From Rebecca billardiae RCC1528 (lineage: Eukaryota > Protista > Haptophyta), in NCBI GenBank assembly GCA_965240325.2, contig OZ251246.1, positions 496,001-560,000 on the forward strand: DNA of 64,000 bases, given 5' to 3'. The notes below the pieces were generated by a model. The model was not told where the DNA came from and did no database searches. It worked only from the letters and a program-made list of their open reading frames with translations. Every line of letters starts with the position of its first letter. Position 1 is the first letter of the stretch. Both the position numbers and the translations under genes were made by a program. Below, piece after piece: positions 16,094-45,247 of the stretch.

Positions 16094-16408
16094 CTCCCGA
16101 GTGGCAGTCTGCCCACGGTCGCAATGCGCTGGCGCGCGTCCGGCTGCCCGCCGGAGGCGGCGGGTCCGCGCGTCGTGGTGACCAGGTGAGTCCACTGGTG
16201 CTGAGACTGCGCTGATCCTGGTGGCCCGTGGCCCCGTGCGGCCCGTGGCCCGTGGTGTGACCGGCGGTCCGATACCGCAGACCGATACTCGACGATACGG
16301 ATGGTCGATAGTGCGATTAGCGATTAGCGATACGCCCGCGTGATACGGTCATGGATTACGCCTTACGGTGTCCGAAGACCGAATAATAATAAATAAATAA
16401 TATATATA

Positions 16409-16420
16409 CATACCACGTCG

Positions 16421-16424
<4 letters not shown>
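16409..16424 (+). mobile_element. 16-nt extreme 3' stub of the ...CATACCACGTCGTTAA retroelement family
   Basis: CATACCACGTCGTTAA is identical to the ends of the copies at 55278-55338 and 26276-26689(-). TA repeats lie on both sides. Confidence 0.55.

Positions 16425-16468
<44 letters not shown>
16422..16468. repeat. (TA)n microsatellite
   Basis: Directly visible. Confidence 0.95.
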
Positions 16469-16472
<4 letters not shown>

Positions 16473-17760: not shown

Positions 17761-19107
17761 TCACAGTCCGATGCCGAGGGACAGCGTGGCCGCGGGCAGC
17801 GCGTCGCCCGACGGCAACGCCTCGTCAATGCGCTTCTGCAGCGCCGCCCACTGCTCGCGCAGGTCTCGCCAAAACCCCTCCGGCGTACCGGCGAGCGCCT
17901 CCTCGTCGAGCTCGGCGGCGCGTGCCTCGAGCTGCCGGAGCCATTCTGGCTCGGGCTCCGCGATGCGCCCGCCGGTGGCACCGGCGGCGGCAGCCTCCGC
18001 GTCGGCGCGGCCGCCGGTGCGGCAGGCGTCCGCGTACGCGCGCACGGCCTCGTACCCCGCGCGCACGAGCGACGCCTTCGTCCCCGCGCTGAGCCCGAAC
18101 TCGCCCGCGCCCACAAACGTTGTGTTGATGTCCACGACGTCAATCCGCGGCGCCGCTCCGCCGCCCGCGTCCGCGCGCGCGCCGACGAGCGCGCGCCACA
18201 GCCGCATCGCGCCGTCGTCGCCGGCGTCGGCGGCGTGCGCCGAGTGCGCCTGCCCGCGGTGGATCGAGTTCGCCGAGTCCGGCCCCCACATCATCGTGTC
18301 CACCACCTGCAGCGCAAACTCGCCGAGCGTGCGCACCTCGCGCTCGCCCGGCCGGCGCGCGAGCAGCAGGGCGAGCGTGCGGCCACCGTCGGGCGGCATG
18401 GCGGCGAACGCGTCGACGGGCAGGTTGCGCAGCAGCCCGCCGTCGACGTACAGCCGCCCGTCGATCTGGACGGGCGCGTAGAAGAAGGGCACCGCGGACG
18501 ACGCGCGCACCGCGCGCGCCACCGGCAGCGTCGGCGCACTCGTGTGGTCAAACCAAACCAGCGAGGCGTTTGTCACGCACGTTGCGGGGATGCGCAGCCG
18601 GATGCGCGTGAGGGCGTAGAGCTGGGCGAAGGTGACGTTGCGCACGCGCGCGCGCGCGGAGAGCAGCTCGTCGATCCGCGCCTCGAGCGCGTCCCCCTTG
18701 AAGAAGCCGAACCTCGTGAAGAGGCGCTCCAGATCCTTCACGCCGTTTCCGGAAGTGTCCGTGAGCTCTCCAAAGTCGATCGAGACGAGCGCGCCGATGA
18801 GCTCGCGGCCGGTGTACCCCGCCGCGAGGAGCGCGGCGACCTGCGAGCCCGCAGATGTGCCCGCGACGCCCGTGACCCCCGCGAGCTCGCCCGTCTCCTC
18901 GAGCGCCGCCGCCGCGCCGCCGTACGCCACGCCCTTCACGCCGCCGCCCTCAAAGACGAGTTTCGTCACGGGCGCGCAGCGCGCGGCGGCGGGCGTGGGC
19001 GAGGATGGGCCGCCGGGCGAGGAGAGGCGCAGATAGAGCCCGGCGCCGACGGCGAGCGCGAGCGCGAGCGCGCCGAGCGCGACGCGAGGGCCGCCCTGCG
19101 CGTCCAT
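17761..19107 (-). CDS. Patatin-like phospholipase with N-terminal membrane anchor
   Basis: GGGVKG, GTSAG (GxSxG) and DGG motifs. Intronless. Confidence 0.92.
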   Translation of the reverse strand: MDAQGGPRVALGALALALAVGAGLYLRLSSPGGPSSPTPAAARCAPVTKLVFEGGGVKGVAYGGAAAALEETGELAGVTGVAGTSAGSQVAALLAAGYTGRELIGALVSIDFGELTDTSGNGVKDLERLFTRFGFFKGDALEARIDELLSARARVRNVTFAQLYALTRIRLRIPATCVTNASLVWFDHTSAPTLPVARAVRASSAVPFFYAPVQIDGRLYVDGGLLRNLPVDAFAAMPPDGGRTLALLLARRPGEREVRTLGEFALQVVDTMMWGPDSANSIHRGQAHSAHAADAGDDGAMRLWRALVGARADAGGGAAPRIDVVDINTTFVGAGEFGLSAGTKASLVRAGYEAVRAYADACRTGGRADAEAAAAGATGGRIAEPEPEWLRQLEARAAELDEEALAGTPEGFWRDLREQWAALQKRIDEALPSGDALPAATLSLGIGL

Positions 19108-19286
19108 GCGCGCCGATCTACCGAACACGATCGAGACCGATGACCAGCAGGACTGACGGACTGTGCATCCGAGTGTCCCGAGAAAAGGACCATCTTGATG
19201 CTGGGCATTTGATGGTTCGACGACGATCAAAGATTCAAAGGACCATCAAATACCGCGGTCCTCTTCCGTCAGAACCAACGTACCAG

Positions 19287-21209: not shown

Positions 21210-24050
21210 TTACGAATCGTCATCATCCGACGACAGATCCAAAGACCTGATTGTCCAATGGTCGTCGTCAGATTCAGCCGCAGTGTGACCTGTGTCGTCG
21301 CCGTGTGGTGGTACTGTTCGGAGGTCTGTGTCGTCGCAGTGTGGTGGTACTGTTCGGAGGTAACCTGCACCGTTGCATCTCTCGAGCAGCGGTCTCAAGA
21401 CCCCTGAGCTGCGACGCGCTTCTGAGCAGCCAGCATCGTCGACCAGGGCCCTGCTCGCCGTCACCACAGGCACGACCTGTGGCGGTTGCTGCCGTCCTGC
21501 ACCTGCTCCAGCCGCCATCGATGAGAATGGTAGTGCTGGCGCAACGGTGGTGTTGATGCCTGCTGGTAGTCCCTGGTCGTAGATGCCAGCCCAGCCAGGC
21601 GCAGCCCGGGTTGAGTCACCTGCATTGCCACACAGATGCTGCTCGCCCAGGGCCCAGGCACCACCATAACCATTGACCACCCAGTTGCCAACCGGATGGA
21701 TCGTGCCATATGGCGAGCGCCAGCGGACGGTGCTGACTGCGAGCAGTGGCATGCCGACTGCCACCAGTGGCGGCGGTGGCGATAGCAGCGGCGCGGCGTC
21801 CGGAACGGCGGCCATGTGGCCGCTGTGAGTGCGCCGTCGCTCCGCGGCGCGCCTGCGCTGGTCACCGGTGCCATGCTCCACTGCGACCAGCGGCGGCGGT
21901 GGCGATAGCAGCGGCGCGACGTCCACAACGGCGGCAATGTGGCTGCTGTGAGTGCGCCGTCGCTCCGCGGCGCGCCTGCGCTGGTCACATGTGCCATGCT
22001 CCACTGCGACCAGTGGCGGCGGTGGCGATAGCAGCGGCGCGGCGTCCGAAACCGCGGCAATGTGGCTGCTGTGAGTGTGCCGTCGCTCCGCTGCGCGCCT
22101 GCGCTGGTCACCGGTGCCATGCTCCACTGCGACCAGCGGCGGCGGTGGCGATAGCAGCGGCGCGGCGTCCACAACGGCGGCAATGTGGCTGCTGTGAGTG
22201 CGCCGTCGCTCCGCGGCGCGCCTGCGCTGGTCACCTGTGCCATGCTCCACTGCGACCAGCGGCGGCGGTGGCGATAGCAGCGGCGCGGCGTCCGAAACGG
22301 CGGCAATGTGGCTGCTGTGAGTGTGCCGTCGCTCAGCGGCGCGCCTGCGCTGGTCACCGGTGCCATGCTCCACTGCGACCAGTGGCGGCGGTGGCGATAG
22401 CAGCGGCGCGGCGTCCGAAACGGCGGCAATGTGGCCGCTGTGAGTGCGCCGTCGCTCAGCGGCGCGCCTGCGCTGGTCACCGGTGCCATGCTCCACTGCG
22501 ACCAGCGGCGGCGGTGGCGATAGCAGCGGCGCGGCGTCCGAAACCGCGGCAATGTGGCTGCTGAGAGTGCGCCGTCGCTTCGCGGCGCGCCTGCGCTGGT
22601 TAGCGGTGCCACGCTCCACTGCGACCACTGGCAGCAGTTGCGATAGCAGCTGCTCGACGTCCAAAACGGCGGCCATGTGGCTGCTGTGAGTGCGCCGTCG
22701 CTTCGCGGCGCGCGTGCCCTGGTCACCGGTGCCATGCTCCAGCCTGCGCCTGCGGACGCTCACCACGTTGACCATGCCGTCCAGCTTGTGCGTGGCGCAC
22801 CGGCTGGCGCGCGCATCGCCCGACATGCCAAAACAAGGCGCCTTGGTGCAGCCCACGTGATCACACTTGCGGTTCCGCACGTCGATCATGCCGGCCAGCT
22901 TGTGCGTAGCGCACCGGCTGGCGCGCTTCTCGCCCGGCATGCCGAACACAGGCTCCTTTGTGCAGCCCGCGTGATCACACTTGCGGCTCCTCACGTTGAC
23001 CATGCCGGCCAGCTTGTGCGTAGCGCACCGGCTGGCTCGCGCATCGCCCAACATGCCATAACACGGCGTCTTGAAGCAGCCCGCGTGATCGCACCTGCGG
23101 TGCTGCACGTTGACCATGCCGGCCAGCTTGTGCGTGGCGCACCGGCTGGCGCGCGCGTCGCCTGGCATGCCGAGTGAAGGATGCTTGGTGCAGCCCGCGT
23201 GATCGCACTTGCGGCTCACCACGTCGACCATGCCGGCCAGCTTGTGCGTAGCGCACCGGCTGGCGCGCGCGTCACCCGGCATGCCGAACACAGGCCCCTT
23301 GGTGCAGCCCGCGTCATAACACTTGCGGTACCTCACGTCCACCATGCCGGCCAGCTTGTGCGTAGCGCACCGGCTGGCGCGCGCTTCGCCCGGCATGCCG
23401 AACACAGGCCCCTCGGTGCAGCCCGCGTGATCACACTTGCGGCTCCTGACATCGATCATGCCGGCCAGCTTGTGCGTAGCGCACCGGCTGGCGCGCGCGT
23501 CGCCCGGCATGCCAAAACAAGGCGCCTTGGTGCAGCCCGCGTGATCACACTTGCGGCTCCTCACGTTGACCATGCCGGCCAGCTTGTGCGTAGCGCACCG
23601 GCTGGCGCGCTTCTCGCCCGGCATGCCGAACACAGGCCCCTTGGTGCAGCCCGCGTGATCACACTTGCGGCTCACCACGTTGACCATGCCGGCCAGCTTG
23701 TGCGTAGCGCACCGGCTGGCGCGCGCGTCGCCCGGCATGCCGAACACTTGCCCCTTGGTGCAGCCCGCGTGGCCACACTTGCGGTACCTCACGTCCACCA
23801 TGCCGGCCAGCTTGTGCGTAGCGCACCGGCTGGCGAGCGCTTCGCCCGGCATGCCGAACACAGGCCCCTCGGTGCAGCCCGCGTGATCACACTTGCGGCT
23901 CCTCACATCGATCATGCCGGCCAGCTTGTGCGTAGCGCACCGGCTGGCGCGCGCGTCGCCCGGCGGCGTAGCCCGGGTGGGCGGGTGGAAAAGACGAGCT
24001 CGAGCCCCGCGCGAGCCGCGACTCGAAGGCCCGACCCCCCCAACACTCAA
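21210..24050 (-). CDS. EsV-1-7-type cysteine-rich repeat protein plus a second 40-aa repeat array; start codon uncertain
   Basis: About 10.5 copies of the 38-aa unit RKCDHAGCTKxPxFGMPGDARASRCATHKLAGMVNV match the EsV-1-7 motif (C-x4-C...C-x2-H). The track start is not an ATG; the first ATG is near 23914. Confidence 0.75.
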   Translation of the reverse strand: MSVGGVGPSSRGSRGARARLFHPPTRATPPGDARASRCATHKLAGMIDVRSRKCDHAGCTEGPVFGMPGEALASRCATHKLAGMVDVRYRKCGHAGCTKGQVFGMPGDARASRCATHKLAGMVNVVSRKCDHAGCTKGPVFGMPGEKRASRCATHKLAGMVNVRSRKCDHAGCTKAPCFGMPGDARASRCATHKLAGMIDVRSRKCDHAGCTEGPVFGMPGEARASRCATHKLAGMVDVRYRKCYDAGCTKGPVFGMPGDARASRCATHKLAGMVDVVSRKCDHAGCTKHPSLGMPGDARASRCATHKLAGMVNVQHRRCDHAGCFKTPCYGMLGDARASRCATHKLAGMVNVRSRKCDHAGCTKEPVFGMPGEKRASRCATHKLAGMIDVRNRKCDHVGCTKAPCFGMSGDARASRCATHKLDGMVNVVSVRRRRLEHGTGDQGTRAAKRRRTHSSHMAAVLDVEQLLSQLLPVVAVERGTANQRRRAAKRRRTLSSHIAAVSDAAPLLSPPPPLVAVEHGTGDQRRRAAERRRTHSGHIAAVSDAAPLLSPPPPLVAVEHGTGDQRRRAAERRHTHSSHIAAVSDAAPLLSPPPPLVAVEHGTGDQRRRAAERRRTHSSHIAAVVDAAPLLSPPPPLVAVEHGTGDQRRRAAERRHTHSSHIAAVSDAAPLLSPPPPLVAVEHGTCDQRRRAAERRRTHSSHIAAVVDVAPLLSPPPPLVAVEHGTGDQRRRAAERRRTHSGHMAAVPDAAPLLSPPPPLVAVGMPLLAVSTVRWRSPYGTIHPVGNWVVNGYGGAWALGEQHLCGNAGDSTRAAPGWAGIYDQGLPAGINTTVAPALPFSSMAAGAGAGRQQPPQVVPVVTASRALVDDAGCSEARRSSGVLRPLLERCNGAGYLRTVPPHCDDTDLRTVPPHGDDTGHTAAESDDDHWTIRSLDLSSDDDDS
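21755..22740. repeat. 120-bp tandem repeat, 8 units (EHGTGDQRRRAAERRRTHSSHIAAVSDAAPLLSPPPPLVAV)
   Basis: Directly visible, near-identical units. Confidence 0.95.
22760..23962. repeat. 114-bp tandem repeat, about 10.5 units (EsV-1-7 motif)
   Basis: Directly visible. Confidence 0.95.
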
Positions 24051-31711: not shown

Positions 31712-31717
31712 TATAAG
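31712..31717 (+). promoter_or_regulatory. TATA-like element upstream of the permuted tRNA
   Basis: TATAAG lies about 25 nt before the leader helix. Confidence 0.45.
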
Positions 31718-31741
31718 TGCCACCACTTGAGTGAGCTTGAG

Positions 31742-31862
31742 CAGCTGGCTTGCAGCAACAACACTTTCGCAATTGGGGCGAGGTGTCGTCGGTTCGAATC
31801 CGGCCATGGCCCACCTGGCCATGTGGTGCAGTGGCAGCATACCTTACTAAAAAGGCCAGCTG
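31742..31862 (+). tRNA. Circularly permuted tRNA-Pro (AGG or TGG) gene
   Basis: 3' half (T)GGGG-CGAGG-TGTC-GTCGG-TTCGAAT-CCGGC-CATGGCC-C at about 31774-31812, then spacer ACCT, then 5' half GGCCATG-TG-GTGC-AGTGGCA-GCAT-A-CCTTA-CT(A) at 31817-31849. Leader CAGCTGGCTT pairs with trailer AGGCCAGCTG. Confidence 0.75.
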
Positions 31863-31866
31863 AGAC

Positions 31867-31884
31867 TTTTCTTCAGTTTTTTTT
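31867..31884 (+). terminator. Pol III T-run terminators
   Basis: TTTT (31867-31870) and T8 (31877-31884) directly follow the trailer. Confidence 0.65.
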
Positions 31885-32568
31885 GAGTCGTATTATTCGC
31901 ATATATTCAGCGCAGTATAGTTATCGTGATGCTGCCGATGTTGCGCACATGAACGACAGCCAGTGCTGATCACTCAATCAGTTTGGGGGACGAGGCGACA
32001 CTTATCCGTGTCTGGTCTTATTTGAGTTTGACGTCGCGGCAACACGGTCACGCGCGGCATCTGCTTCATTAGTATTACGCAGAGTACTGACTGGTCGCAG
32101 CTAGCAGCATAACTCACTGCAATACCCTTGGCTCACCTGCTGGAATTATATCCCAGGGGCCAGAAGGGACTCGATGATCGGCTGACGGCTGCATAGTCCG
32201 CTTGGTTCATGGTTGACTTCAGGAGTTCGGCCCTCGACCTCATCTCGGAGTCAGGCAGCAAGTCGGCCTGGGCCAATAAGACGTTCTAGCGCTTAACTCA
32301 TCACTGACGTGCACTTTCTTAACGACATCAAATAATAAAAGTTGCTAGACAATAGCGGAGCTCAGGGGGTCTGGCAGAGTCAATCTGCGCGCGCTGAAGA
32401 ACAGCAGGAGCTGACGGAGCAAAGCAGTTATTATTGCACTTATTTCAACGCAGCACTGCTTTAAATACTCGGTGCAGCTAATCAGCAACTCATCGGTAAC
32501 TGCACCAAATGGCAGGAGCCAGCTGAGGCGCCCTCGCGCCTGTGTCATTATGTAATCAGCATATAGAA

Positions 32569-33783
32569 TTAGTCCCAACTGGGAGGTGGCTCGTAGTCGT
32601 ACGTGTTCGCGTCAGACTTCACGCGCTCGAGGTACGAGGTCGGCAGGAAGCTGCGGCGCACGAGCCACTCGATGCAGTTCATGTCCTCATACATGGTCGC
32701 GCGCAGCAGCTCGACGCCGGCCTGGCTGAGCCGGACGCGGCGCTGACCGCTGGACGACGAGTGGGTGTGCGGCGGCATCTGCAGCAACGAGGCGTCTTGC
32801 GCGAGGCTCACCTTCCCCGGTGCGTACCCGAGCCTCTGCGCCATCGCGACCGCCAGCCCGCGGAACGACTCCTCCATCGTCTCGGTCGTGCCGACGAACA
32901 GCAGCTGCGATCCCAGGGAGGCGAGCCCCGCGGTTCCGCCCCAGTAGAAGCCGATGCCCGCCGTCATGTGCCCCACGCGCAGGAACACCTGCTGCGCCAG
33001 CGCCACCGGATCCGGCTGCGCGAGGATGGCGGCCGTCACGCGGCCGAGGTCCAGCGCCTCGTTCTGGTGGGGCAAGCCGAGCGCAGGCTTCGCGGCGGTG
33101 CGCACGAACTGCTGCTTGGCGCTGCGCATCAGCGGCAGCCCGTCCGGGCCGAATGCCGTCGCGTTCTGAACGCGCTGTGCCGCCACCCAGCCACGCAGCG
33201 CGCTCATGTCGTATGTGAGCATAAAGTTCCAGCAGGCGACAGCGCGACCGACCGGGTCGCGCGCCCAGAGCACGACGGGCAGCTTGCGAGCGAGGGCGCC
33301 GAGCCGATCGGGCCTCGAGAGCACGGCCTCCTTGACCGCGTCGAACTGCCCGAGTCGCCGGATGGTCATCTTCTGCTTTCTTCCTGGCGGTGCGAGCTCG
33401 ACGGTGCGCAGACCGCAGTGTTGGCGGAACGAGTTGTTGTGCGACGCGACGAGCGGACCGTGTACGGTGATGAGCCGGCCGCCACGCTGGACGTTTGCAC
33501 CCCCTATCCGTACGCACTCGTGAAGGTCGACCCGAAAGTCACACAGCCCGACGCGCTCGCACAGGTCGAGCAGGCCGAAGTGCACGGCATCGCCGCCCGT
33601 CTTTCCGACGTGCACAGAGATGACCCCGCGGCAGCTTCCACCAGGCAGCCTTGCGCAGACGTCCGCTCTTGGCGGCAGGTTCTGGTCGAACGGGGTAGGC
33701 GCCGCTGCTGTGCCTACGTGAGGCCACGCCGCGAGGGCGAGGCCGGCAGCCGCCGCCATGGCGCGCGCGGCGCCTGCGTGCAT
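32569..33783 (-). CDS. Sulfotransferase family (Sulfotransfer_2-like) secretory-pathway protein
   Basis: Motifs VHVGKTGG (5'-PSB), WARDPVGRAVACWNF (3'-PB), FVGTTETMEES, MYEDM. Signal-like N-terminus. Confidence 0.75.
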   Translation of the reverse strand: MHAGAARAMAAAAGLALAAWPHVGTAAAPTPFDQNLPPRADVCARLPGGSCRGVISVHVGKTGGDAVHFGLLDLCERVGLCDFRVDLHECVRIGGANVQRGGRLITVHGPLVASHNNSFRQHCGLRTVELAPPGRKQKMTIRRLGQFDAVKEAVLSRPDRLGALARKLPVVLWARDPVGRAVACWNFMLTYDMSALRGWVAAQRVQNATAFGPDGLPLMRSAKQQFVRTAAKPALGLPHQNEALDLGRVTAAILAQPDPVALAQQVFLRVGHMTAGIGFYWGGTAGLASLGSQLLFVGTTETMEESFRGLAVAMAQRLGYAPGKVSLAQDASLLQMPPHTHSSSSGQRRVRLSQAGVELLRATMYEDMNCIEWLVRRSFLPTSYLERVKSDANTYDYEPPPSWD

Positions 33784-33990
33784 CGGGTTGGAAGAACTCG
33801 GCGTCCGCGCTGCAAATGGACGGAGGTGCTGCCGCAGCCAACGGCCCTGGTCCAGACCTTCCACTTGTCCAGCCAGGGTCGCACCCGGACACCGCGAGAA
33901 CACCGGCCGGACGCGGGCGGTTGGGCCAGCAAGCTCGCCCGTCGAGACGCTCGCGCACCCGCCAACGGGCGCGACCACACGCGCGCGGCG

Positions 33991-36423
33991 ATGAACATCC
34001 ACCTGAGTGACGGCACGGCGGCGGGCGGCGCGGATGAGCTCGGCGATGCGGGCCCGCTCGTCGCGCCCGAGGCCGAGCACCTCGTCGAGGCGCTCTCGCG
34101 CTTCGCCGTCGCGGACATTGGCTCGGACCGTTGGCTTACGCAGCACGGCTGGCTCGAGCGGCTGAACATGCAGGCGCACGTGAACGCGGCGCAGATGCGC
34201 GACGAGTTCGTGATGGAGGCGCTCGTGCTGCACGAGAAGCTCCCCGTGCTCGTGCACGACCTCATCGCCACCGAGCTCTGGCGCGCGCGCGTGCTCCCGC
34301 AGCTGCGCGAGGAAGCGCACAAGCGCGACGGCGTCCGCCTCTACCAGTGCTGCTACCACGAGGCGGTGGTGGCGAACCTGCTCGAGGCGGTGCTGTACCA
34401 CCGGCAGGCGTGTGAGGCCGTCGCCGACGCGCTCGTCGACCTCGCCGACTACTGCCAGCGCCGCCTCGTCTGGCTGCTCGAGCGCGCGCGCCCGCCCGCG
34501 GACGTGACAGCCACGAGCTCGGAGGAGCTGCGTGCCGCGCTCGTCGGCGGCGGCTCGGGCGCGGAGCTGCAGCGGCAGCTCGACGCGATCGAGATGGGCG
34601 CGGCGCTCTCGGCGATCTCCATCCTCCGCTTCCTCACCGACCACGCCGACGTCCTCCCCGCCGGCGTGCTCGGGCGGCTGGTCGATACTCACGACGTACT
34701 CATGACGCTAGCGCCGCTGCTTGAGAAACGGCCGTGGCGCGCCAAGCGCGGGCTCGACGGGCGCGAGGTGCGCTTCGAGGGCGGGCAGTGGATGCCGGTG
34801 GCCGAGGCCGACGCGCACCGCATGCCCAAGCCCGAGGCGCAGCTCTGGCTCGCCGTCCTCGGCCTGTGCACCGACCCGCTCGTGCGGCGCCGGTACGCTT
34901 TTACGGACTTTCGAAAGGCGACGGTTGTGCGGCTTCGGAAATATCTGCATGAAGGCGTGGTGGATCAGATCCCGCCGTTGGTCGGGCTGCAGCGCGCGAT
35001 CGACGAGCTCTCGCTCTCGGAGACGCCCGCCGTCGAGCACAAGCCCGCCTACGTGCTCGAGCAGCTGCCCGAGATCCGCGACGCGCTCGCGCGCGCCCAG
35101 GTGCGCGCGGCCCGTGACCGCCCCTGACGCGCACGGCGCGCGCGCGCGCGGGCGCACGCGGCCGGGCTGCTAGGGGCGATGCGCTGATCCCGCGCGCGCG
35201 CGCTGCCGCCCGTCCGCGGCGCAGGACTGGGAGGCCATCGCCGAGGCGCAGCTCGAGGGCTGCTTCAACACCTCCGCCGAGGCCAAGCGCGCGCACGCCG
35301 AGCAGCTCGCCGAGCTCTATGCCACGCCGGCGGTGGAGCGTCTCCTTGCCGGGCCGACGGGCGCGGCCGGCGCGGGCGCGGCCGGCGGCGCGGCGGGCGG
35401 CGGCGCGGACGTGGCGAGTGCAGAGCACGTGCTCGAGCTGACGTTCTGGGAGGCGAGCGCGGACGACGACGCCGCCGATGACGAGGCGACGCGCCCGCCG
35501 CGCGCCGTCGTGCACGCGACGTGCGCGCGCGCGCCCTCTGTGCAGACCCCCTTCACACCGGACCCGGCAGCCGGACTGCTTTCGTCCAAGGTGAACCGCG
35601 TGCAGGCGGCGCTGTACGCGCGCGCGCCCGGCGACGGGAAGATCGGCGCGGAGGCGCTCGCGCGCGTGGGCCCGGTGGAGCTCGCGCTCGACGCGCGGAA
35701 GCAGAAGCAGTGGTGCCAGCTCGGCCACGACCCGACCGCGCTGCGCGTGCAGCTGCTCGTCGCGCGCACGCCGGACGGGCGCGTGCGTGCGGGCGCGGTG
35801 CGCGTGACGGCGCCAGAGCGGCACGTCTGCCGGCTGGAGTTCGTGCCCGAGCGCGCGGCGGCGGAGCACACCGCCGTGGTGATCGCCGAGGGCTGCGCCG
35901 CCGGCGCGCAGTCGCAGTTCCGGCCGACGGGCGGCACGGCCACAGTCGCCGTGCCGCCCAGCTGCCGGGTGCGTGCGGAGGTGCGCGCCGGCGAGCGCGT
36001 GTGGCGCGCGGCGGAGACTCGCCTTGAGCTGGACGCGAGCAAGGCGCTGCAGTGGGCGCAGCTCGGCGGGCGGGGCAAGTCGGGGCTGCGCGTGCAGCTG
36101 CGCATCCGCTCGGCGGTGCACGGCGGCGCGGCAGGTGCGGCGCGCACGCGCGCGCGAAATCCCTGCACCCCGCGCGCATGCCAGCTCTCGCTTGCCACCC
36201 GCCGCTCACGGGTGACGTACTTCCGCACGCGCCGCGCGCATGCCGCTGTGTCCGCCCGCGCCCCCTGCCGACAGCCCTCGAGGTGGCGTCCGTGTACGTC
36301 ACCGCGCCGGAGGACGCCGCCGGCGCTGACGCCGAGCAGGCTGCCGACGCGGCGCGCGCGACGGCCGCGCCGGACACGAGCACTGCCAACGCCGCTCGGC
36401 CCAAGGTGGAAGTCATCGGTTGA
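33991..36423 (+). CDS. ZMYND10: ZMYND10 (BLU)-like dynein assembly factor lacking the MYND finger
   Basis: Exons 33991-35100, 35225-36134, 36275-36423. Motifs IGSDRWLTQH..LERLNMQA, EKLPVLVHDLIATELW, YHEAVVANLLEAVLYH, DLADYC, ISILRFLTD, DQIPPL. Confidence 0.8.
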
Positions 36424-37516: not shown

Positions 37517-37588
37517 ATCGGCGTGGCGCAGTGGAAGCGCGTTGGGCTCATAACCCATAGGTCGTCAGATCGAAACTGACCGCCGATA
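37517..37588 (+). tRNA. Initiator tRNA-Met (CAT)
   Basis: Cloverleaf with A1:T72, three G-C pairs in the anticodon stem, T-loop ATCGAAA (A54, A60) and TTTT downstream. Confidence 0.97.
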
Positions 37589-38366
37589 CAACGCCTTTTG
37601 CCCTTTTGCTCTTTCTTTCTCTCTTGTGCTCGAGCACATTCGCGCGCCCGCGCGTGGTCGACCCTGCTGCAGACGCCTCCGCGCTTCAGCCCTGTCTCAC
37701 CGCTCCCAGCGGGCTGTCCTACCTGAACCCATGAGCCCGCAGCGCACAAGCTGCAGCGCACGCATCGCGTGTGGCGCATCCCGCTTGGGAGTCATGCGTG
37801 TAATAATGTATATGAGTGGCGTTGTCGGAGCTGCTAGTGCTGGGTTACGAACGAGTTACACGTCGTCGACCAGCACGGCTGTGGGGCCGGCTATGGTGCG
37901 ATTAGGCGATTACCAGGTGGGCACGGCTGCCAGATGGGAGTCAGAGCGGCTAAGCGGTGCTGTGATCGCCCACTATGTGGTCAGGGAGAGCGCGGAAGCA
38001 CCCGAACGCTTCAAGCTGAGGTAGCTACTGATGAGAGTTGGAGTCTCTGCCGGCCAAGCCCAGTTTGCTAACGCCTAACCGCCCGGCGCGTGCTGGGGCG
38101 AACACGCGGTCCAGCGCCCGGCGACTTGACCAGAGGTGTGCACGCTCGGCGACGCAGTGTGAAGATGTGATGTGTGTCACGGACTTGTTCACTGCCCACG
38201 CGCACGGCCGCCATTGTAATTGCGGCGGAGCCTTAAGCCTTTCCAGCCGAGTTGCTTGCGCCCGAAAAAATCGCCGTGGCGCCCGGCGCGAGATCGATCG
38301 CCGAGGCGGGACACGAAGTGGCCCAAGCCGCCCCAAGACCACCCTCGCTCCCGACTCCCGTGTACC

Positions 38367-44179: not shown

Positions 44180-45247
44180 TCAGCACGGCCCTTCGCGTGC
44201 ATCGGCATTGCTGCCAGCACTTGCACCGGTCGCCGCATTCGCCCCTCCCAGCGCGCCCCACCTGCGCAGCAGCTCGTACACGGCTGCGCTCGCGGCAGTC
44301 GCGACGTTGAGCGAGTTCTTGGCGCCAAAGGTGGGCAGGTGGACGACCGCGTCCACCTCGTCGAGCACGCGCGCGTCGACGCCGGCGATCTCATTCCCGA
44401 GCACCAGCGCGAGCGGCGGGCGCAGCGCCTCCGTGGCGCGCGCCGAGCCGTCAAACAGGCTCAGCCCTCCCTCGGTTGTCTCAGCCGCGCACACGCGCAC
44501 ACCGCTCGCGCGCAGCTCGCGCACAGCGGCGAGCGCGCTGGGCGCGTGCGCGTGCACGACGAGCTCGGCGGTTCCCATCGCCGTCTTGAGCAGCCGCGGG
44601 TGCGGTGGCGCGGGCGTGATCCCCGCCGTCACCACGCGCTCCAGCCCGGCGCACTCGGCGAGCCGAAAAATATTCCCGACATTCTCGGCGGAGCGGATAT
44701 TGTCTAGGACGAGTGTGAGCGCGTGTGCGGGCGGCGGGCGGGCAGCGAGCGCGGCGTCGTGGTTGCGGAGCCACTCGGCGCGCTGCGCGCGGTACTCGCG
44801 TGCGAGGAACGCGATTTGGTCCGCGATCACGCGCGCGCGCGACGGGTGGTCGCTCGCCTCGAGCGCGCCCGCCGTGCGCGGGAACACAAACGCGTTGTAC
44901 GTGCGCAGCGCGGCGGAGCCCTTGAACGACGGGTCGTCGAGGAAGTCGAGCGCGTCTGCACCGTGCGCGAGCGTCAGCGCGGCGTGGAGACGCGCACGCC
45001 GCTCGGCGACGCCCGGGAAGCGCGAGTCCTGCTGCTCGACCGTGCACGTCGATCGCGTGTGATTCCTCGTACTGGTGGCATCGGCGGCACCGGGCGGACC
45101 AGCGTCAGCACCATCGTACGCGCACGCCCGTATGATGTAAGGCCTAGATCGCGGCGGCGGCGAGGGAAGCGGACGTCGCACGCCGCCCATGGCCGTCGCC
45201 AATACTGCTGCAAGCAGCGGACGACACGCGACGATCGCGGCCGACAT
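44180..45247 (-). CDS. SpoU/TrmH family RNA methyltransferase, probably organelle-targeted
   Basis: Motifs LVLDNIRSAENVGNIFR, LVLGNEIAGV, KNSLNVATA. Signal-like N-terminus. Confidence 0.92.
   Translation of the reverse strand: MSAAIVACRPLLAAVLATAMGGVRRPLPSPPPRSRPYIIRACAYDGADAGPPGAADATSTRNHTRSTCTVEQQDSRFPGVAERRARLHAALTLAHGADALDFLDDPSFKGSAALRTYNAFVFPRTAGALEASDHPSRARVIADQIAFLAREYRAQRAEWLRNHDAALAARPPPAHALTLVLDNIRSAENVGNIFRLAECAGLERVVTAGITPAPPHPRLLKTAMGTAELVVHAHAPSALAAVRELRASGVRVCAAETTEGGLSLFDGSARATEALRPPLALVLGNEIAGVDARVLDEVDAVVHLPTFGAKNSLNVATAASAAVYELLRRWGALGGANAATGASAGSNADAREGPC

Follow-up and report, generated by a model that had tools for sequence, protein, structure and literature searches.

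The window analysed here, a 64-kb stretch of DNA from the haptophyte Rebecca billardiae with a G+C content of about 70%, carries a compact plus-strand unit (31712-31884) in a 1.1-kb spacer that adjoins a methyltransferase gene. The unit opens with a TATA-like box, TATAAG (31712-31717), followed after 30 nt by the leader strand CAGCTGGCTT (31742-31751) of a 10-bp leader/trailer helix, at which the predicted transcript has its 5' end, and then by a leader linker of 14 nt (31752-31765) that is unpaired on folding. Next come a complete anticodon-type arm (31766-31782), with the stem TTCGC/GCGAG (31766-31770/31778-31782) and the loop AATTGGG, which lacks U33; a variable loop, GTGTC (31783-31787), in canonical register and including G46 and C48; a T arm, GTCGG/TTCGAAT/CCGGC (31788-31804), with the full B-box consensus GGTTCGAATCC as well as G53:C61, T54, T55, C56 and A58; and a 3' acceptor strand, CATGGCC, with the discriminator C73 (31805-31812), CCA being unencoded. 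The intervening ACCT (31813-31816) forms, together with C73, a hairpin loop that closes the acceptor stem, and leads into a 5' piece (31817-31841) composed of the 5' acceptor strand GGCCATG (31817-31823), U8 and G9, a D arm, GTGC/AGTGGCA/GCAT (31826-31840; A box, with A14, G15, G18, G19 and A21), and A26. This piece is followed by CCTTA-CT (31842-31848), an A-rich trailer linker, AAAA (31849-31852), the trailer strand AGGCCAGCTG (31853-31862) of the 10-bp helix, and a Pol III-type terminator (31867-31884) with runs of four (31867-31870) and eight (31877-31884) T residues.

The permuted, tRNA-Pro-like arrangement of this unit is genuine: tRNA positions 27-73 (31766-31812) precede ACCT and positions 1-26 (31817-31841), and the two acceptor strands pair at 7/7 positions. 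When the pieces are rejoined between positions 26 and 27, all 21 stem pairs (21/21) are intact, and the D- and T-arm nucleotides (A14, G18, G19, A21, G53:C61, T54, T55, C56 and A58) are present together with U8, the G15:C48 pair, and C13:G22 with G46. An initial annotation of this DNA had listed the TATAAG, leader, T arm, acceptor strand, ACCT, D arm, trailer and T-runs, and each of these lies where it had been placed. Its description of a 3' half encoded before a 5' half was right as to the permuted order but not as to the word half, as the upstream piece has a complete 5-bp anticodon-type stem of its own. A reading on the minus strand was considered and rejected; TTCGAA is palindromic, yet only the plus strand accommodates the TATA box and the T-runs as well as G18G19 and the T-loop TTC.

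The flanks of the unit resemble those of a Pol III gene. TATAAG lies 30 nt ahead of the leader helix and the T8 run 15 nt past the trailer helix, a Pol III-like spacing, and both signals are scarce in the window, with five TATAA[AG] and two T8 matches on the plus strand; no internal run of four or more T residues occurs inside the unit. The flank features reported for eukaryotic permuted tRNA genes, i.e., a TATA-like box, a T-stretch, a spacer free of promoter and terminator, and unencoded CCA (PMC3978253), are all present, although the distance from TATAAG to position 27, at 54 nt, slightly exceeds the "within 50 bp" given in the same review (PMC3978253). These signals suggest that the unit is probably still transcribed by Pol III. 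The 10-bp helix noted between leader and trailer can form, with nine Watson-Crick pairs and one G.U pair, and it appears in both the minimum free energy and the centroid fold of the 121-nt unit (z = -1.92), but its rarity is moderate, as a helix of equal strength was found in 149/5000 shuffles (3%) and at 270/3000 random genomic placements (9%); the CAGCTG that it contains is a palindrome with 39 occurrences in the window. Most TATA[AT]A matches in the window stem from a short microsatellite of the TATATA type (16401-16470). The window also holds a canonical tRNA-Met(CAT) gene (37517-37589, plus strand; 61 bits with Rfam) that carries the initiator hallmarks A1:U72, a GGG/CCC anticodon stem and the T loop ATCGAAA (A54, A60), and it is flanked in the same manner as the permuted unit: the TATA-like CATATAC precedes it and T-runs lie downstream. 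In several of the known lineages the initiator gene is permuted, but here it is ordinary.

The combination of G1:C72 and C73, which the initial annotation had taken as a eukaryotic tRNA-Pro signature, is indeed the state reported for eukaryotic tRNA-Pro (PMC2377447), and it is present in the permuted unit. Human tRNA-Pro-UGG (PMC12217144) and the Arabidopsis tRNA-Pro family (PMC2863065) have the anticodon arm CTCGC-TTTGGGT-GCGAG followed by a variable loop of 5 nt; in the unit, the upstream piece, TTCGC-AATTGGG-GCGAG-GTGTC, agrees with these in register and in all lengths, and its stem is identical to theirs at 9/10 positions. Judged by its sequence, the unit is thus derived from a eukaryotic-type tRNA-Pro. 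Because the upstream piece carries a full Pro-type anticodon stem in canonical register, the break falls at 26/27. A 26/27 join gives a molecule of 72 nt with the architecture of human and plant tRNA-Pro, in which the loop AAUUGGG has A in place of U33 and UGG is displaced by one, such that the formal anticodon is UUG.

The initial annotation had instead placed the junction in the anticodon loop, giving a cloverleaf of 71 nt. A join at 32/33-33/34 does yield a 71-nt tRNA-Pro(UGG) with the canonical loop CUUGGGG, in which U33 is present, and G35, G36 and G37 are obtained with the 33/34 join only. In this model, CCTTA-CT provides C32 and U33 as well as another 5' strand for the anticodon stem, and TGGGG and CGAGG (31774-31783) are the sole part of the upstream arm that is used. 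The proper Pro loop speaks for the earlier proposal, but it comes at a cost: CCTTA pairs with CGAGG at only 4/5 positions, with an A31.C39 mismatch, the variable loop is reduced to 4 nt, the stem is one base off that of canonical tRNA-Pro, and the local anticodon hairpin of the primary transcript is 4.3 kcal/mol better than the stem between the two halves. The anticodon arm is hence abnormal in either register. Scoring of the swapped halves, which had been proposed as a check, gave a result that cuts both ways; ARAGORN accepts the rejoined molecule as a tRNA, but it does so for nearly every join (giving Pro-UGG, Pro-AGG, Gln-UUG or Phe-AAA), and it cannot choose the junction because none of these joins drops out at a lower threshold setting than the real tRNA-Met does. 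A type II junction (37/38) was rejected, as the anticodon would be AAA.

The initial annotation had further proposed that the transcript is processed by the splicing endonuclease, the substrate of which in the known cases is a motif known as bulge-helix-bulge (BHB). BHB candidates of the form h-B-H-B-h' were enumerated between the strand formed by the 5' piece and trailer and the strand formed by the leader and 3' piece, with bulges of 2-4 nt, with H of at least 3/4, and with G.U pairs and one mismatch allowed in H. This exhaustive enumeration found no sensible BHB, strict or relaxed, at 26/27, 32/33, 33/34, 34/35 or 37/38, and constrained folds were likewise without one; processing by the splicing endonuclease is thus not borne out at any plausible junction. 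The linkers between the leader/trailer helix and the tRNA body measure 14 and 11 nt with the 26/27 join and 22 and 4 nt with the 33/34 join. The single high-scoring BHB-like motif, in which 31733-31743 pairs with 31861-31870 (a 4-bp H with two G.U pairs; bulges AGCA and ACT), is situated where the leader/trailer helix has its outer end, upstream of the predicted transcript start, and is probably spurious. The broader proposal that this lineage has a processing system for permuted tRNAs has a single locus as its basis.

Our tentative preference, which we hold as a serious possibility short of probable, is that the unit may be a circularly permuted gene from which a tRNA is still made, by a maturation route that does not depend on a BHB. 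A transcript of about 125-140 nt would fold into a tRNA-shaped body. A 5-nt loop would close its acceptor stem, and its gap near the anticodon arm would be clamped by the 10-bp helix of leader and trailer, an arrangement shared with known permuted pre-tRNAs. Removal of the ends and their joining at either of two sites, 32/33-33/34 or 26/27, would give a circle, in which the acceptor loop would next be cut by RNase P and tRNase Z before addition of CCA. Because the BHB is absent, the joining of the ends would need to differ from every case described so far, and this step is the weakest link of the explanation. If the unit does yield a tRNA in this manner, the 33/34 join would be slightly favoured over 26/27, because only the 33/34 join gives a usable anticodon loop. 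The more specific proposition of an expressed, working tRNA-Pro, either joined or held in two pieces by the 10-bp clamp, made without a BHB and with a novel junction (26/27 or 33/34), seems unlikely to us.

Permuted tRNA genes have been described in Cyanidioschyzon merolae, in Ostreococcus and Micromonas, in the nucleomorph of Bigelowiella natans and in Thermofilum pendens (Soma 2007; Maruyama 2010; Chan 2011; PMC3978253), and also in Auxenochlorella (PMC12633428). The list of lineages given in the initial annotation was therefore incomplete, with Auxenochlorella missing (PMC12633428); its further remark that none is known in haptophytes agrees with the literature that we searched, in which no haptophyte permuted tRNA was found. 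The known spread is thus confined to a few groups: a red alga, prasinophytes, a trebouxiophyte, a green-algal nucleomorph and one archaeon. The present unit shares with the Soma-type genes the leading position of the 3' part, the TATA-like box, the T-stretch, the unencoded CCA and a leader and trailer that can pair. Of the eukaryotic tRNA consensus nucleotides it keeps U8, R15:Y48, G18G19 and U54U55C56, whether U33 is kept depending on the join. Its 4-nt spacer compares with 5 nt in B. natans and 1-7 nt in T. pendens, and the intervening sequences of known permuted genes span 1-74 nt (PMC3978253).

Other properties set the unit apart. The junctions described to date are 15/16, 20/21, 37/38, 50/51 and 59/60, and neither 26/27 nor 32/33-33/34 is among these; the Soma-type junctions have a BHB in the 34 reviewed cases, whereas the unit has none and shows an abnormal anticodon arm. 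tRNA-Pro is absent from those 34 cases, whereas the unit is tRNA-Pro-like and lies in a member of the Haptophyta, and it seems to be a single gene, in contrast to the sets of 2-11 genes in known lineages. Because the BHB is missing and the anticodon arm is abnormal, we do not classify the unit as a plain new member of this family. The split tRNA genes of Nanoarchaeum equitans provide a further parallel, in that there, too, a GC-rich helix joins the sequence after the 5' piece with that before the 3' piece; they are, however, separate genes, the products of which are joined in trans at a BHB, whereas the unit would give one transcript and has no BHB.

The idea that it was the splicing endonuclease that allowed permuted genes to exist is founded on the BHB at the reviewed junctions. 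If the unit is functional, it would widen the distribution of permuted tRNA genes to a haptophyte and challenge the requirement for a BHB, and it would mean that scanner-based tRNA inventories of haptophyte genomes can be incomplete. A unit that works without a BHB would show that such genes are not confined to Archaea and to genomes derived from Archaeplastida, and would imply that tRNAs can mature by an end-joining or two-piece route not yet described.

Among the alternatives, the one that survives best is that the unit is a dead relic, i.e., a rearranged tRNA-Pro gene and young pseudogene that matures into nothing useful, which we regard as a real, if somewhat doubtful, possibility. In the usual model of their origin, permuted tRNA genes arise when a gene is duplicated in tandem and the outer parts are then lost. 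A relic could have come about by this route, by duplication of only part of the gene, or when a copy of a circularised pre-tRNA was reinserted; its TATA box would have come from the parent gene, and its helix and T-run would be fortuitous in an AT-richer spacer. The absence of a BHB fits such a history, as do the lack of U33 in the anticodon loop in the register indicated by homology and the mismatched stem of the 33/34 model. The helix is not rare in this GC-rich genome, being equalled at 9% of placements and including a palindrome found 39 times in the window, and TATAAG lies 28 nt ahead of position 1 of a hypothetical full-length upstream copy and is thus possibly inherited. A retro-copy of a CCA-tailed tRNA was rejected as an origin, as C73 is followed by ACCT and not by CCA.

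Several observations are difficult to reconcile with a relic. The constrained positions outside the anticodon loop are all intact, the differences from canonical tRNA-Pro that matter are confined to one 7-nt loop, and 57 constrained positions would not have come through neutral decay unharmed; moreover, TATAAG, end-pairing and T8 are unlikely to occur jointly at the right distances by chance. The halves that would have been lost, by contrast, are unrecognisable by local alignment, which gave no significant match to the missing halves in the flanks (p 0.26, 0.93 and 0.55), and are at best about 48% identical in the registers expected from a duplication of 76-77 bp: at an offset of 76, the leader matches positions 1-25 at 12/25 sites (p 0.01), and at an offset of 77, the trailer matches the upstream anticodon arm at 10/21 sites (p 0.008). 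The statistic for duplication of the whole unit, 28/76, is average, being reached at 1194/3000 random places in the genome. An origin by tandem duplication is plausible on these in-register similarities, and, if this was the origin, retained parts that are flawless next to outer parts that are nearly erased would point to long-term selection. Should the unit nevertheless be a relic, it would be a rare snapshot of the birth or death of a permuted gene, and a warning against calling such genes from the order of their arms alone.

A second alternative, which we consider quite unlikely, is that the locus encodes an expressed tRNA-like RNA that does not decode, or a tRNA in two pieces. In the two-piece version, the acceptor loop would be cut by RNase P and tRNase Z while the gap at 26/27 would stay unsealed, the pieces being held together by the acceptor stem and the 10-bp helix, like a two-piece permuted tmRNA; if left uncut, the RNA could be a Y-RNA-like or tRNA-mimic scaffold. 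A break at 26/27 leaves each tRNA arm whole on one piece, the two ends pair to form a closing stem, a U-tail follows on the 3' side, no BHB is present, and a loop without U33 suits a non-decoding role. Permuted rRNA and tmRNA in two pieces provide established precedents, and two-piece permuted tmRNA occurs in alpha-proteobacteria, cyanobacteria and jakobid mitochondria. Like the unit, two-piece tmRNA has a T arm and 3' acceptor strand, an intervening piece and a 5' acceptor strand in this order, and its precursor is cut at the acceptor into pieces that remain base-paired without ligation, which is the point of likeness to a two-piece product of the unit; unlike the unit, it is bacterial or organellar and contains a tag reading frame or a remnant of one, and the Rfam tmRNA models gave no match to the unit.

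The only Rfam match of the unit was to the permuted tRNA-like module of YrlA (RF02553), a bacterial Y-RNA-like family in which T arm, acceptor-like hairpin and D arm are likewise in permuted order and the ends pair. The match, which with 24 bits (E 0.013) falls far short of the gathering score (69), spans the tRNA-like core only, and the Ro-binding stem of YrlA is absent here, as is any other recognisable module; the unit is hence not assigned to this family, and the match reflects mere likeness to a tRNA. We know of no eukaryotic nuclear RNA of the two-piece or non-decoding tRNA-like type and, to our knowledge, an extra helix at the hinge between D and anticodon arms is without precedent in a translating tRNA; both points argue against this alternative.

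That unrelated tRNA-like fragments came to lie side by side by chance, or that the assembly is in error here, is highly improbable, as the acceptor strands are complementary at all seven positions, the full cloverleaf set (T arm 5/5, acceptor 7/7 with a gap of at most 20, and D-arm signature) occurs at exactly one site in the 64-kb window and in 0 of 200 first-order Markov windows searched on both strands, where nine simulated matches lacked the D signature, and no further copy of either piece is found in the window. The expectation that standard scanners would miss the locus proved right, the sole detection in the window by ARAGORN and by Rfam at the gathering score being the tRNA-Met gene at 37517-37589.

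Relatives of the unit were sought in several ways. A metagenome scan for the permuted pattern returned 0 matches; a 21-mer from the 3' part had two chance matches in bacterial coding sequence, and an 18-mer from the 5' piece had two chance matches in viral contigs, without tRNAs. For the methyltransferase gene that adjoins the unit, the first match was in Diacronema lutheri, with a homologue of 41% identity, and the D. lutheri locus of this homologue contains no tRNA-like element. Exact-protein look-ups of the open reading frames that overlap or adjoin the locus gave no match. The haptophyte setting is also seen in a SpoU-type methyltransferase gene (44183-45247), the best named relatives of which are from D. 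lutheri (69%) and Prymnesium parvum (52%), followed by Gephyrocapsa. By these matches the host is a haptophyte close to D. lutheri, most likely of the Pavlovophyceae. A gene located 12 kb from the locus is present in Logan assembly ERR14847148.

Beside the unit, a long open reading frame on the plus strand (32542-35127) competes with one on the minus strand (32569-34692); the former shows low GC3 in its first approximately 480 codons and has no homologues, and the real gene here probably lies on the opposite strand or is a shorter one. Elsewhere in the window, a minus-strand open reading frame of 946 aa (21210-24050) contains 11 EsV-1-7 cysteine-rich repeats (Pfam PF19114, E 5.6e-133), and another (17761-19230, minus strand) encodes a patatin-like phospholipase (Pfam E 2.9e-33), for which the nearest ESM Atlas cluster consists mostly of Nucleocytoviricota, so that a link to giant viruses is possible.
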